64,000 nucleotides of DNA from Monocercomonoides exilis PA203. Taxonomy: Eukaryota > Protista > Preaxostyla. The number at the start of each line of letters is the position of its first letter. Position 1 is the first letter of the stretch. Below are positions 373 to 4,265 of this stretch, piece after piece. Made by a program: the position numbers and the translations under genes. The notes beneath the pieces were generated by a model, which saw only the letters and a program-made list of their open reading frames with translations, searched no databases and was not told the DNA's origin. The DNA is taken from positions 372,001 through 436,000 of the forward strand of contig LSRY02000012.1 of NCBI GenBank assembly GCA_001643675.2. Reading direction: 5' to 3'.

Positions 373-679
373 TCTAAATTTATGAATAATTTTTTATCAA
401 TAATAAAATATTTTAACAATTAGTTTTATTTATAAACCCGAAATTAAAGAAAGTGATCAATAATCCCTTTGTTCAGTTGAAATTGATATGAAGTTCCACA
501 TAATTACATATTTGTAATTCTATTAAATGGTCTATCATTAATTGTAATTTCGTTAAAAAATAAATAAATATTATTTGCTTGTAAAATGATGTTTCATTCT
601 ACCTTTTATCAACAGCAGTTGAGCTTTAATTGAGTAAAACAAATTTTTTTCTTGAACAATAACACTTTCTAATGCATGC

Positions 680-2176
680 TCATGTTGTTGCATTTTGTAA
701 TGTTGAAGAACGTAATGGCAAAGATGGAGGTGTGACCATCATTTCTTCTTTAAACATTTGATTTGCTGAATTTTTTCCAATATCATCATCATCATCATCA
801 TCATTGTTGCTCTCTTCCTCCAACTCTGAATCAAGTTCGGGAATATGTTCAATATATCTGTTATATCTTGTAATAGGCCCGTATGCAGAAAAAGCTTTTC
901 GAAATTCTTGAATTCTATCACCAAAATACAGCAATGCCACTTCATGAGGCATTGTCGCAGGAGCCTGTGTAACATGTTCGGATCTTTTTCCAGCAAGCCC
1001 TTTCCAAAACTTCATTCGCTTGTTAAATAACAGTGCTGTGCATTTAGGATGCTTCCATGCAACGTGCAGCCACGCAGACGATGGAGCAAATCGGACAAAC
1101 ATGAAGATTTCCTTTGCGTGCCCTGCATCGAATTGCCGCACTCCGTAAGTGACAAAAGTTCCCACATACGTAAAGGGTGCATTCAAAAAGACGACATTGC
1201 CTGTCCAGTTGCGATGAAGTGCTTGAGTTGTCCAAAATCTGCGCGCAGCAACGATTCTCTGTGCTGCAGGCTCGCTTGCTGGGTCGAGATCGATCAGCTG
1301 CTTTGTCATTGAAATGACTCCGTGGATGATAAAAGGTGGAGTGAACCACGAAGGACACTTTGCACTTCGACTTGAGAGCAATCCATCGCTTTCGGGAACG
1401 TGAGCCTGTTGAGGGACATCAGGGCTCAAAGGAATCCTTATTGGCGATTTAGACAAATTCAGAATCTTTAAAGAAGGACGAGTCGTTTTTATGGGCAATG
1501 TAACTGAAGTTAGAAAATTGCTTGAAATTTTTGCGCAATCCAACTCATGCAAATCTAATTTAGGATCTTGCAGTTCTGGCGTTAGATCAGGGTCAAGTAA
1601 TTGTATGGGGTACGGGAATGGGATTGTATTATCATTATCAGGTTCTTCTTGATTAAAATGAGCAGGATTCCAAGTCCAATAAAGATCTGGTCTTGGAGCT
1701 TGCTTAACATCCCACGGGAATGACATTGATGAAGATTTTCTGGCTCGAACTTCTTTTGGTTTTGGAAGTTGAATGTAGTAACTTTTTCCTTTGTAAATAA
1801 TATATGTTCTGTCGTTCAATATTCTTGGTGTTCCATAGTGGGGGGGTGCCTGTTTCGTTTCGTTAGTTTGAATCTTGCTCTCTTTTGGCTCTATAGATAA
1901 GAATTGATTGAATTCTTGTTTTCCTCTTTTTTTTCTTTTTTGAGGTGATGGGGGTGGAGTTGACGAAGGAGAAGATAACGAAGGTGAAGCTACTTCGGAT
2001 TGTTCAGATGCTTCATCTTCTGATTCTGGAAATAAATCTGAAGGAGATTCTTCTTCGTAATCTCCATCTGATGTAGGTTCAAATAATGATGAGGCAGCTT
2101 CATCTTGTTCAGCAGCATTATCATCGGAACTATCTTCATAATAATAGTCTGGATCATTTTTTGAACGAGAATTCAT
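680..2176 (-). CDS. Phage/bacterial-type DNA N6-adenine methyltransferase (Dam, PF05869-like) domain fused to an acidic, S/P-rich N-terminus
   Basis: Intronless 498-aa ORF. The domain at about 1351-878 has the ordered family motifs SWFTPP, IDLDPAS (SAM binding), W-x-G-x-V-F-L-NAPF (NPPY/F-type motif IV), AW, RMKF and LYFG...FRKAFSAYG. Basic patch QKRKKRGK in the N-terminus. Confidence 0.85.
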   Translation of the reverse strand: MNSRSKNDPDYYYEDSSDDNAAEQDEAASSLFEPTSDGDYEEESPSDLFPESEDEASEQSEVASPSLSSPSSTPPPSPQKRKKRGKQEFNQFLSIEPKESKIQTNETKQAPPHYGTPRILNDRTYIIYKGKSYYIQLPKPKEVRARKSSSMSFPWDVKQAPRPDLYWTWNPAHFNQEEPDNDNTIPFPYPIQLLDPDLTPELQDPKLDLHELDCAKISSNFLTSVTLPIKTTRPSLKILNLSKSPIRIPLSPDVPQQAHVPESDGLLSSRSAKCPSWFTPPFIIHGVISMTKQLIDLDPASEPAAQRIVAARRFWTTQALHRNWTGNVVFLNAPFTYVGTFVTYGVRQFDAGHAKEIFMFVRFAPSSAWLHVAWKHPKCTALLFNKRMKFWKGLAGKRSEHVTQAPATMPHEVALLYFGDRIQEFRKAFSAYGPITRYNRYIEHIPELDSELEEESNNDDDDDDDIGKNSANQMFKEEMMVTPPSLPLRSSTLQNATT

Positions 2177-2670
2177 CTTCGTGCGATGGCGTCAGCTGCA
2201 ATTAAAAAAATCAATTTAAAATGTTGATCTTCCCCTTATATATTTTTTCATGCATGAAAAAACAAAATCGAAAATAATAAATATATTAATTAAATAATGC
2301 CACTGTGACAAAATGTATTTAAGATAACAATTGAACATTTCATTAAATCATTTGCAAAACTTAAATATTAGAAGGATAAAATGAAAACATTTTTACAAAA
2401 TTTTTTTCTTTTTTTCATTTTCATTATTCTCTTTTCCAATTGATGCATATTTGAAACAATCGTTTTTCTGTGGATTTTGTGATAAATCATTTTCAAAAGA
2501 AAAAAGAAAACGAAAAAAAAGAAAAAAAATATTTTTTTGTTTTGTTTTGTTGTGATTTGAATTTTATGAATTCAATAAACACGAAAAAACTTTTCTCGGT
2601 TGAATAAAAGATAATGTGCAATAATTTGTTGATGAAATAAAATAAATGTCACACAAATATTTTTGTATTT

Positions 2671-4265
2671 TTTTTGAAATCATTTTTTTATTCTGCGTAT
2701 TTGGGAAAAAAGGTTTTTCATCATTCACTGAAATATCATTGATATGTTGCATGTCTATCAATTGAAACAGTTGTGAATGTTTTCTATGTGATGAAAATAA
2801 ATATGTCCTTAACTGCGCTTATCACTTTTGAGTGTTCATTCGAAATTATTTTTTTTACAAAATTTCAAGACTTTTATTTTTGGGTTGAAATGAAAAATGA
2901 ATATAATACTCAAATTAACATTCCAATTAACCAAATTTCACCATCTGGAAATAAATGCTTTTCAATGTTGTTATTTCCATTCAAAAATAATTCTTGATGA
3001 GTTGGAATGAAATTTTAATGAAAATATTCATTTTTCATTTTAATACAAAAAGTAAACAGAAACAACTTTTCAGAAATATTAAAAACGTTTGTGGTGATAT
3101 GAATAACTGCAATCTTTTTTATAGAAAAACTGTGAACTTTTTGTTTTATTTTTGCAATCAAATTTTTTTTTGCAAAAAAAAATTGTTATTATTTCTTGAA
3201 ATACAGTTTGCGTAAAAAATACCGGACAAGATCGATATCTCAATAACAGCAAGAAGAAAATTTCTGTTAAATTTCCCCAAAATATATCTCATCAATACAA
3301 ACTCACATGACATACGAGACTTTCAAAACAACTTTATTTATGCTCAGAAAAAACAAATGATTAAAATCTCTGAGAAATAGGATTTTGAGTTTCCCCGAGA
3401 TTTCAATCATTTATTTTCTCAGAGCACAAATGAGGCTATTTTGAAAGTTTTGCATATCAATTGAGTTTGTACTGATGAGATGTATTTTGAGGAAAATTGT
3501 TAGAATTATTCCTCTTGCGGTTATTGAGAAATTGATCTTGTCCGGTATTTTTTGCGCAATCTGTGCGTGTGAGGTTGAAAGCACTTTGAAAAATATCAAA
3601 GATGTTTGTTTGTGGATGAGAAAATTAAATTAATAAAAAAAATTGAGAAAGTTAAATAAAGCAATGAGTGAAATAAAGATTTTATACTCCGAAAAAAATA
3701 GCTTGAAAGTCAGTATTATCCCATTTGAGAAAAAATTCTTTTCGTCATTTCGAACTGCAGTTATTGTTTAAACAAAATTATTTCGAAAATAATTATCAAA
3801 ATGCTCTAATAATGAATTTTCAATTCTTGTGATGTGTTAAATCAAACTTTATTTGAAAAACATACATAAAAATTTTCAATAAAATCAAGTTTGTTCAAAA
3901 AGATAAATTTTATCAGACTCACGAAAACATTTGCTTCAATTTTTGGACAATAATAAGGAGGAAATAATGCTTTATTTATTAATGAAAAATGTGGAAATCA
4001 CATTGAATGTGATGGTCATGAATGATAATTTTCAAATTTACATTTTTTCATAAAAAAATTTCGGATCGGAGATATCCCTTGAACATCAACAAAAGAACAT
4101 TGAAAAGCGAAAAGGCTTTCAAAAGACATCTTTATCTTTATTTCGTCCAAAACATTCGTTTTTGAAACAGTTGAAATGAATAAAATATTGGAAAACAATA
4201 TTTCTTTTTCATGATTAAGAGTCTCTGAATAATGAATATCTGGAAAAAACTGATGATTTCAAAAA
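2671..4265. repeat. Extended, more decayed outer arms of the same palindrome
   Basis: Inverted matches: 2775-2842 vs 4090-4157 (46/68 identical, ungapped); AATAACTGCA 3102-3111 vs 3756-3765; TTTTTGAAATCAT 2671-2683 vs 4253-4265. Confidence 0.7.
3203..3564. repeat. Inverted repeat / palindrome core: 175-bp arms (3203-3377 and 3390-3564) with a 12-bp spacer
   Basis: Ungapped arm alignment has about 32 mismatches in 175 nt (about 82% identity), e.g. AAAAAATACCGGACAAGATC (3214-3233) vs GATCTTGTCCGGTATTTTTT (3534-3553). Confidence 0.95.

Follow-up and report, generated by a model that had tools for sequence, protein, structure and literature searches.

A nuclear Dam-type methyltransferase gene of Monocercomonoides exilis, member of an oxymonad gene family and candidate DNA N6-adenine writer

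DNA adenine methylation in eukaryotes is usually ascribed to AMT1-type enzymes of the MT-A70 family. Methyltransferases of the prokaryotic Dam type (PF05869) are known as host genes in chlorophytes and chytrids (PMC4738411), and those of Chlorophyta, Carpediemonadida and haptophytes have been described as separate clades derived from horizontal transfer, with most other eukaryotic Dams being assigned to DIRS or long terminal repeat (LTR) elements within a single clade derived from transposable elements (TEs; bioRxiv 10.64898/2026.05.21.726589). The searched text of the latter work does not mention Monocercomonoides, metamonads, Preaxostyla or oxymonads, nor does that of the former mention oxymonads. 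Here, a stretch of 64,000 nucleotides from Monocercomonoides exilis PA203 (hereafter the window; GenBank assembly GCA_001643675.2, 82.3 Mb in 101 contigs; contig LSRY02000012.1, equivalent to C6:372001-436000 in our contig numbering) was analysed for a Dam-type gene at positions 680-2176. The gene consists of a single intronless open reading frame (ORF) on the minus strand, which starts with ATG, encodes 498 residues and coincides with the public model P0001 (identity and coverage both 100%). The reading that we favour, with confidence only a little above even, is that it represents a nuclear Dam-type gene of an old oxymonad family, which was acquired from a prokaryote or phage and is a candidate DNA N6-adenine writer.

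Membership in the Dam family was assessed with several profiles. Residues 276-399 matched PF05869 (E 6.7e-7); their 29.6 bits, where the gathering cut-off is 28.1, are marginal if taken by themselves, and a six-frame search of the genome with the Dam profile returned 32.1 bits for the window gene and 41.8 bits for a paralogue. The homology to Dam is not due to chance, because, when the oxymonad copies were made into a profile, it matched 2482 proteins at E<=1e-10, and 7647 at E<=0.001, among 1.84 billion representatives. In the ESM Atlas, 30 of 30 feature matches were PF05869 clusters, and the top three were listed mainly as Uroviricota or Bacteria. Against TIGR01712 (phage_N6A_met), the window protein scored 17.9 bits and the paralogue 27.8, with an equivalog cut-off of 97.05; as judged from these scores, the window protein is homologous to this family but below equivalog level. 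The MT-A70 profile (PF05063) found no match on the window protein, and a PHROGs search with the latter found none either. An earlier examination of the letters alone (hereafter the sequence-only reading) had assigned the gene to PF05869 and not to MT-A70, and the profile searches agree with it.

The oxymonad copies were aligned column-wise with 150 prokaryote-type representatives. The W-x-T-P and I-D-L-D-P-A-S columns are 87-100% conserved among these representatives (W 91%, T 98% and P 97% at the former; D298 100%), and the window protein has WFTP at 277 and IDLDPAS at 295-301. The conserved residues kept comprise W277, T279, P280, I295-S301, A305, A311, L320, W324, N332, P334, F335, F341 and W369, and the C-terminal block is complete (R387, F390, Y417, G419, F425, F429 and G433). 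In this column comparison, P333A and L360F were the only family-conserved residues lost. The sequence-only reading had listed W-x-TP, DLDPAS, NAPF and LYFG in this order, and they were located at residues 277, 296, 332 and 416, respectively. However, its description of LNAPF as a typical Dam motif did not hold, as this segment departs from the N-P-P-(Y/F) of the family. The acidic, Ser/Pro-rich N-terminus of eukaryotic style and the basic patch resembling a nuclear localization signal (NLS), which it had likewise described, are both present (Table 1), and nuclear import of the protein is suggested by this patch. Pfam domains other than Dam—PWWP, PHD, ZfCW and the helix-turn-helix (HTH) of ParB type included—were absent from the window protein.

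Motif IV deserves a closer description. The alanine is encoded by a GCA codon at 1178-1180 (minus strand), where relatives carry proline, with N332, P334 and F335 retained. NAPF is confined to the M. exilis window copy, as every other oxymonad copy has NPPF, and it constitutes a natural Pro-to-Ala variant of an almost invariant triplet. Asn-Pro-Pro has been described as the most conserved triplet of the Dam family (bioRxiv 10.64898/2026.05.21.726589). At the position equivalent to 333, 141 of the 150 representatives have proline and the remaining nine do not (six Gly, one Cys, one Ala and one not itemised), so proline is not absolutely defining for the family. Of note, the best-scoring prokaryote-type relatives include tandem double-Dam proteins from metagenomes (P0010, P0012 and P0015), and NGP(F/Y) replaces NPP in P0016 as well as in the second of the P0012 domains. 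The N6-adenine methyltransferases Erm and KsgA function with N-(I/L)-P-Y, and in M.TaqI the adenine N6 is contacted by the corresponding residue through its main-chain carbonyl. Alanine at 333 need therefore not inactivate the enzyme; by analogy, P333A may lower or alter activity without necessarily abolishing it.

Exactly two copies exceed the Pfam Dam cut-off in the whole genome (82 Mb). The second (C1:203764-206868, minus strand) has an open frame of ~1034 residues (public model P0006, 1077 residues), and its Dam domain is 45% identical to that of the window protein, has the canonical NPPF and scores 39.1 bits with Pfam Dam. It further contains two AT-hook-like RGRKPG motifs around residues 275 and 528, the core of which is also found in the second AT-hook of MeCP2. 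Blattamonas nauphoetae has homologues (BLNAU_7869 and, within one 90%-identity cluster, BLNAU_3623 and BLNAU_8800), and so does Streblomastix strix (at least three types). The Blattamonas loci are surrounded by Sec15, histone-fold, Kelch and cyclin genes. An S. strix gene (SNRW01005090.1, L013:2845-4939) has introns, spanning 2095 bp for 429 residues, and shows in-frame TAA/TAG codons exactly at positions where other copies have a conserved glutamine. These stops would be explained by the genetic code of Streblomastix, in which TAA/TAG encode glutamine. Together, the introns, the variant-code stops and the eukaryotic neighbour genes of the homologues rule out bacterial contamination. Before its MPHE block, the S. 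strix Dam domain is interrupted by an extended stretch rich in Lys and Glu, which is an insert or an intron region. In BLNAU_7869 (JARBJD010000049.1, L014:4107-5467), the 228-residue model ends within the Dam domain, which resumes in another frame from ~4736, and the C-terminal MPHE..FYFG block falls in the next annotated 114-residue 'gene'; this frame change reflects an indel in the assembly or else a real frameshift. In all family members with N-terminal sequence, the Dam domain is preceded, at a distance of 46-460 residues, by a hydrophobic-x-(F/Y)-P-Y motif, which indicates that the eukaryotic N-terminal extension is as old as the family.

Phylogenetic trees were computed from sets that contain no chlorophyte, chytrid, Carpediemonadida or haptophyte Dam sequences. 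Within this sampling, a single clade unites the oxymonad host genes (SH-like approximate likelihood-ratio test, SH-aLRT, 100 in a 162-row tree; bootstrap/aLRT 100/98 in a 49-row tree), with a stem of 1.1-1.4 changes per site that emerges among prokaryote-type Dams and whose sister group the trees do not resolve. The C1 paralogue groups with BLNAU_3623 (94/67) and the window gene groups weakly with BLNAU_7869 (68/35), so the two paralogue lineages probably predate the split between Monocercomonoides and Blattamonas. Rates of nonsynonymous change (dN) were 0.40-0.65 and synonymous change (dS) was saturated in every pair, so no dN/dS ratio was obtainable. From these comparisons, the family, which occurs in at least three oxymonad genera, would go back to one acquisition before their divergence, an ancient one and not particular to M. 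exilis. The lateral acquisition proposed in the sequence-only reading is consistent with the prokaryote- and phage-type kin of the domain, as found in 142 outside matches, but the event must be shifted from this genome to an early, oxymonad-wide one. The search for orthologues that it had asked for found homologues in Blattamonas and Streblomastix.

Transcription was inspected through RNA-seq contigs (four runs; a second, independent study); of the words sampled across window 600-2300, they contain 63-76%. These contigs, which show neither level nor strand, are evidence that the Dam gene is transcribed. That the gene is instead a decaying relic, a contaminant or an assembly artefact appears highly improbable: a Pfam score barely over the cut-off, the frame change in the probable Blattamonas orthologue and the altered catalytic motif speak for it, but the 498-residue open frame lies on a 1.86-Mb nuclear contig, the invariant residues are conserved, and the RNA evidence is joined by homologues in three genera with eukaryotic gene features. 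On the grounds of the open frame, the conserved residues, the RNA contigs and the eukaryote-featured homologues, a contamination or pseudogene reading was rejected. Overall, the data support a resident nuclear host gene of M. exilis, which is neither contamination nor a transposon copy.

The source of the domain was examined through its relatives outside oxymonads. Among the 142 best non-oxymonad matches, the only partner domains were DUF3102, ParB_N, HTH, C5-methyltransferase and HNH, and none was linked to reverse transcriptase (RT), integrase or a chromatin reader. The nearest outside matches looked up were metagenome proteins or entries annotated in IMG as 'phage N-6-adenine-methyltransferase', and one outside relative (P0013) is located in an operon of overlapping genes. 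Viral contigs yielded nothing above 34% identity to the Dam domain and did not indicate a donor. The same genome contains ~24 sub-threshold Dam-like matches in the six-frame search, which correspond to DIRS-type retroelements (Table 1). In these, an RT-RNase H-Dam-like ORF of ~610-730 residues overlaps, in another frame, a tyrosine recombinase ORF of ~1140-1190 residues. Their Dam-like domain is degenerate, with LDAFAT and HPP, and is without the C-terminal R..F/YFG block common to host genes and bacteria.

These elements raise the alternative that the host genes were domesticated from the Dam of a DIRS/LTR retrotransposon or a eukaryotic virus and hence belong in the main TE-borne clade, which we deem unlikely. 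Besides the presence of the ~24 elements, it draws on the placement of most eukaryotic Dams in one TE-derived clade (bioRxiv 10.64898/2026.05.21.726589) and on approximately unbiased (AU) tests under LG+G4 and a C20 mixture, which did not reject a host + DIRS clade (p 0.71 and 0.68), the constrained tree scoring slightly better. However, long-branch attraction is expected between the two eukaryotic groups, both of which sit on long branches, so the AU results are uninformative; when the DIRS domain served as seed for a further homologue search, M. exilis-like copies were all that it retrieved, and the DIRS branch was not broken up. Moreover, with the host-gene hidden Markov model (HMM) the DIRS domain went unmatched up to E<=10, and hhalign assigned host versus DIRS a probability of 9%, compared with 53% when a bacteria-rich profile was set against DIRS, which argues against any special host-DIRS likeness. 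The differing HPP and LDAFAT motifs, the missing C-terminal block, the absence of RT or integrase linkage from all 142 best outside matches and the modest identity of the closest viral contig point in the same direction. Accordingly, we favour a prokaryote or phage as the direct source, at roughly twice the probability of a retroelement or viral route. The sequence-only reading had also considered that many transposon-embedded copies might exist, and what was found is two host copies, with no TE ORFs near the window gene, against ~24 distinct DIRS copies.

A structural model of the Dam domain was obtained with AlphaFold2 from a 122-row alignment (predicted local distance difference test, pLDDT, 87.9; predicted template-modelling score, pTM, 0.82) and displays a class-I methyltransferase fold. 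Searches of the PDB by sequence or profile gave no match, and no PF05869 member has a solved structure. In fold, the best match was the PCIF1/CAPAM methyltransferase domain (Foldseek E 1.8e-5; VIA-align Z 11.3, root-mean-square deviation 3.2, 144 aligned residues), the motif IV of which is of the NPPF type, followed by RlmJ, KsgA/Dim1, METTL5, METTL16, EcoDam and T4 Dam (Z 8-9). This match agrees with the published classification of N6-adenine methyltransferases, in which PCIF1 and the 'chlorophyte-type Dam' clade both belong to group 2 (Iyer et al. 2016, PMC4738411). A complex of the window and C1 Dam domains was also modelled, which yielded a two-fold symmetric interface with an ipSAE of 0.74—a mark attained by 51 of 78 solved complexes and by 2 of 108 mismatched pairs—compared with 0.00 for the best control; runs agreed in at least 82% of contacts, with a partner pLDDT of at least 83. 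The model supports Dam-Dam dimerisation, without distinguishing a heterodimer from a homodimer.

The genome was further searched for other adenine methyltransferases. The six-frame search of the whole M. exilis genome found no MT-A70 (PF05063), and this negative carries some weight because the same method recovers PCIF1, with PCIF1_WW in three exon-like pieces (C49:136362-137047), and two PF10237 genes (C52:436727-437182 and C44:749781-750341, the latter with two TGA codons inside the match). In the literature searched, no paper mentions Monocercomonoides together with N6-methyladenine (6mA). In the window, GATC has an observed/expected ratio of 0.66 (Markov estimate) and is no more unusual than CATG (0.53) or GGCC (0.49), and TGATCA occurs 14 times versus 17.4 expected. 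With no MT-A70 found, a conserved paralogue pair and a predicted dimer interface, the two Dam genes are the leading candidates for any oxymonad DNA 6mA writer.

The nature of the closest solved fold, a cap-specific m6Am methyltransferase followed by RlmJ, KsgA, METTL5 and METTL16, makes RNA adenines conceivable as targets in place of DNA, and the lack of a detected MT-A70 mRNA m6A writer would leave room for such a role. We consider this improbable, since by sequence the domain groups with phage and bacterial DNA Dam enzymes, the fold ranking is biased to existing structures and none has been solved for PF05869, the genome encodes a genuine PCIF1, and the C1 paralogue carries AT-hook-like DNA-binding motifs.

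Another alternative concerns the window copy itself, which might be a weakened or dead partner that dimerises with the active C1 paralogue and aids substrate binding or regulation, in the manner of METTL14 or MTA9. This would fit the occurrence of NAPF in a single copy against NPPF in all other oxymonad ones, its longer branch, the symmetric interface predicted, the retention of both paralogue lineages in Monocercomonoides and Blattamonas, and the existence of tandem double-Dam bacterial relatives, one of them with NGPF in the second domain. Nevertheless, NPPF is kept in the nearest Streblomastix and Blattamonas homologues, which does not fit a pseudoenzyme lineage of old standing, the window protein retains N332, P334, F335 and every other invariant residue, the N-(I/L)-P-Y of Erm and KsgA is compatible with catalysis, and the complex test is blind to hetero- versus homodimers. 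We therefore give this arrangement a rather low probability. A more elaborate version is slightly less likely again, namely that oxymonads, with all MT-A70 lost, rebuilt a two-subunit 6mA writer with C1 as the catalytic subunit and the window protein as the NAPF partner, which would mark AT-rich intergenic or promoter DNA. If true, it would represent a convergent counterpart of METTL3-METTL14 or MTA1-MTA9 from an unrelated family, in an amitochondriate eukaryote.

Under the favoured reading, namely a nuclear Dam-type gene of prokaryote or phage descent, a phage/bacterial Dam domain would have been built into a eukaryotic protein that comprises, in this order, an acidic N-terminus, a basic patch, the FPY motif, Dam and an acidic tail. 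A single acquisition, most likely from a prokaryote or phage donor, would have preceded the divergence of the three oxymonad genera. S-adenosylmethionine (AdoMet) would be bound at the DLDPAS loop, a role taken from knowledge of the family, and the target adenine would be flipped into the N-A-P-F pocket and methylated at N6. DNA is the probable substrate, and the protein would probably dimerise with itself or with the C1 paralogue. Several points weigh against this reading. Activity, substrate and the occurrence of 6mA in oxymonads remain predictions, and in one study eukaryotic Dams expressed in dam- E. coli yielded no 6mA (bioRxiv 10.64898/2026.05.21.726589). The first proline of the almost invariant Asn-Pro-Pro is replaced in the window copy, and the alanine codon is known from one assembly. 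No other terminal branch in the clade is as long as that of this copy (0.80 versus 0.51 for C1), and its probable Blattamonas orthologue has a frame change within the domain. Finally, a host + DIRS clade is not rejected by the AU tests, the nearest solved fold is that of an RNA cap methyltransferase, so RNA may be the substrate, and the modelled complex cannot separate a heterodimer from a homodimer.

The genomic setting is that of an ordinary nuclear gene. Its neighbours encode an oxysterol-binding protein (OSBP), a ubiquilin-like protein, a member of the CSN8/PSMD8/eIF3K family, a TPR protein and a large protein that weakly matches SCAI, in keeping with the intronless gene among housekeeping genes previously described. 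No RT, recombinase or viral ORF was found within about 8-10 kb on either side, as the sequence-only reading had stated, and no long terminal or inverted repeats flank the gene. The GC content is 47% in the Dam-coding stretch, 41-57% in other window genes and 23-28% in intergenic DNA. For the OSBP and ubiquilin neighbours, no synteny was found at the loci of Streblomastix and Blattamonas. Upstream of the Dam gene, window 3200-3565 contains a palindromic core of ~365 bp with 175-nucleotide arms that are 82% complementary, within a palindrome spanning 2671-4265. At least 40 copies of the core were scored on many contigs, with 76-90% identity, and a first look gave 870 candidates; it looks like a miniature inverted-repeat transposable element (MITE) or foldback element that is dispersed and not particular to the Dam gene. 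Later external searches used window 827-1414, 827-1912 or 2671-4265 as queries.

Table 1. Features of the window gene and its protein (window coordinates), and stretches with DIRS-type retroelements elsewhere in the genome (contig coordinates).
Feature	Coordinates	Strand	Basis
Complete coding sequence, 498 residues + stop codon	680..2176	-	ORF, identical to P0001
Acidic Ser/Pro/Thr-rich N-terminal region, residues 1-75, probably disordered	1952..2176	-	29% D+E, 37% S+P+T; no Pfam match
Basic patch KRKKRGK, residues 80-86, NLS-like	1919..1939	-	Motif position
FPYP short motif, residues 187-190	1607..1618	-	Shared oxymonad motif
Dam (PF05869) methyltransferase domain, residues 276-435	872..1351	-	Profile, alignment, AlphaFold2 model, fold match
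WFTP, residues 277-280, N-terminal helix region of domain	1337..1348	-	Motif and alignment
DLDPAS, residues 296-301, presumed AdoMet-binding loop	1274..1291	-	Motif and alignment
Motif IV N-A-P-F, residues 332-335, codons aat gca ccc ttt	1172..1183	-	Sequence and alignment
LYFG, residues 416-419, start of conserved C-terminal YFG..F...F...G block	920..931	-	Motif and alignment
Acidic C-terminal tail, residues 436-498, with poly-Asp run	683..871	-	25% D+E
DIRS-type retroelement stretches	C8:1646000-1655999; C7:1403000-1412999; C1:1996000-2005999		
DIRS-type retroelement stretches	C56:100000-109999; C5:356500-366499; C8:549000-558999		

In comparison with described systems, the fixation of a prokaryote-type Dam as a host gene in eukaryotes is of a known kind, and the new element is the oxymonad member at the level of a lineage. 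The phage and bacterial Dams (PF05869 and TIGR01712, often fused to ParB_N or DUF3102) have the same domain, with 25-34% identity over its whole length and a matching order of W-x-TP, IDLDPAS, N-x-P-(Y/F), R..F and YFG..F...F..G. In contrast to them, the window protein has long eukaryotic N- and C-terminal extensions and NAPF for NPPY/F, and its gene is nuclear, with intron-containing orthologues. The DIRS methyltransferase domain of the same genome is a distantly homologous Dam-like fold, present in ~24 copies versus two host genes; it follows RT-RNase H and overlaps the tyrosine recombinase ORF, whereas the window gene has no such neighbours within about 8-10 kb. That a single genome has both a Dam as host gene and a degenerate one in DIRS elements bears on the debate whether eukaryotic Dams are all TE-derived.

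With PCIF1/CAPAM, the best structural match, the window protein shares no detectable sequence similarity, and it has no WW or helical domain. The METTL3-METTL14 and ciliate MTA1-MTA9 pairs offer a possible analogy, in that two paralogous N6-adenine methyltransferase subunits, one with an altered catalytic motif, are predicted to form a dimer here; however, MT-A70 heterodimers belong to a different family, the motif change of the window copy is lineage-specific and mild, and heterodimer and homodimer are not distinguished. The closest parallels are the chlorophyte-type (PMC4738411), Carpediemonadida and haptophyte Dams, which are likewise prokaryote-type, low-copy host genes independent of MT-A70. 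The fusions of the chlorophyte type (PWWP/BMB with ZfCW/PHD, or ParB-type HTH) are missing from the window protein, and the oxymonad Dams have instead a disordered extension with the FPY motif and, in the paralogue, AT-hook-like motifs. If oxymonads have 6mA, the two Dam genes would be its obvious writers and would add a lineage to those in which a phage-type enzyme took over.

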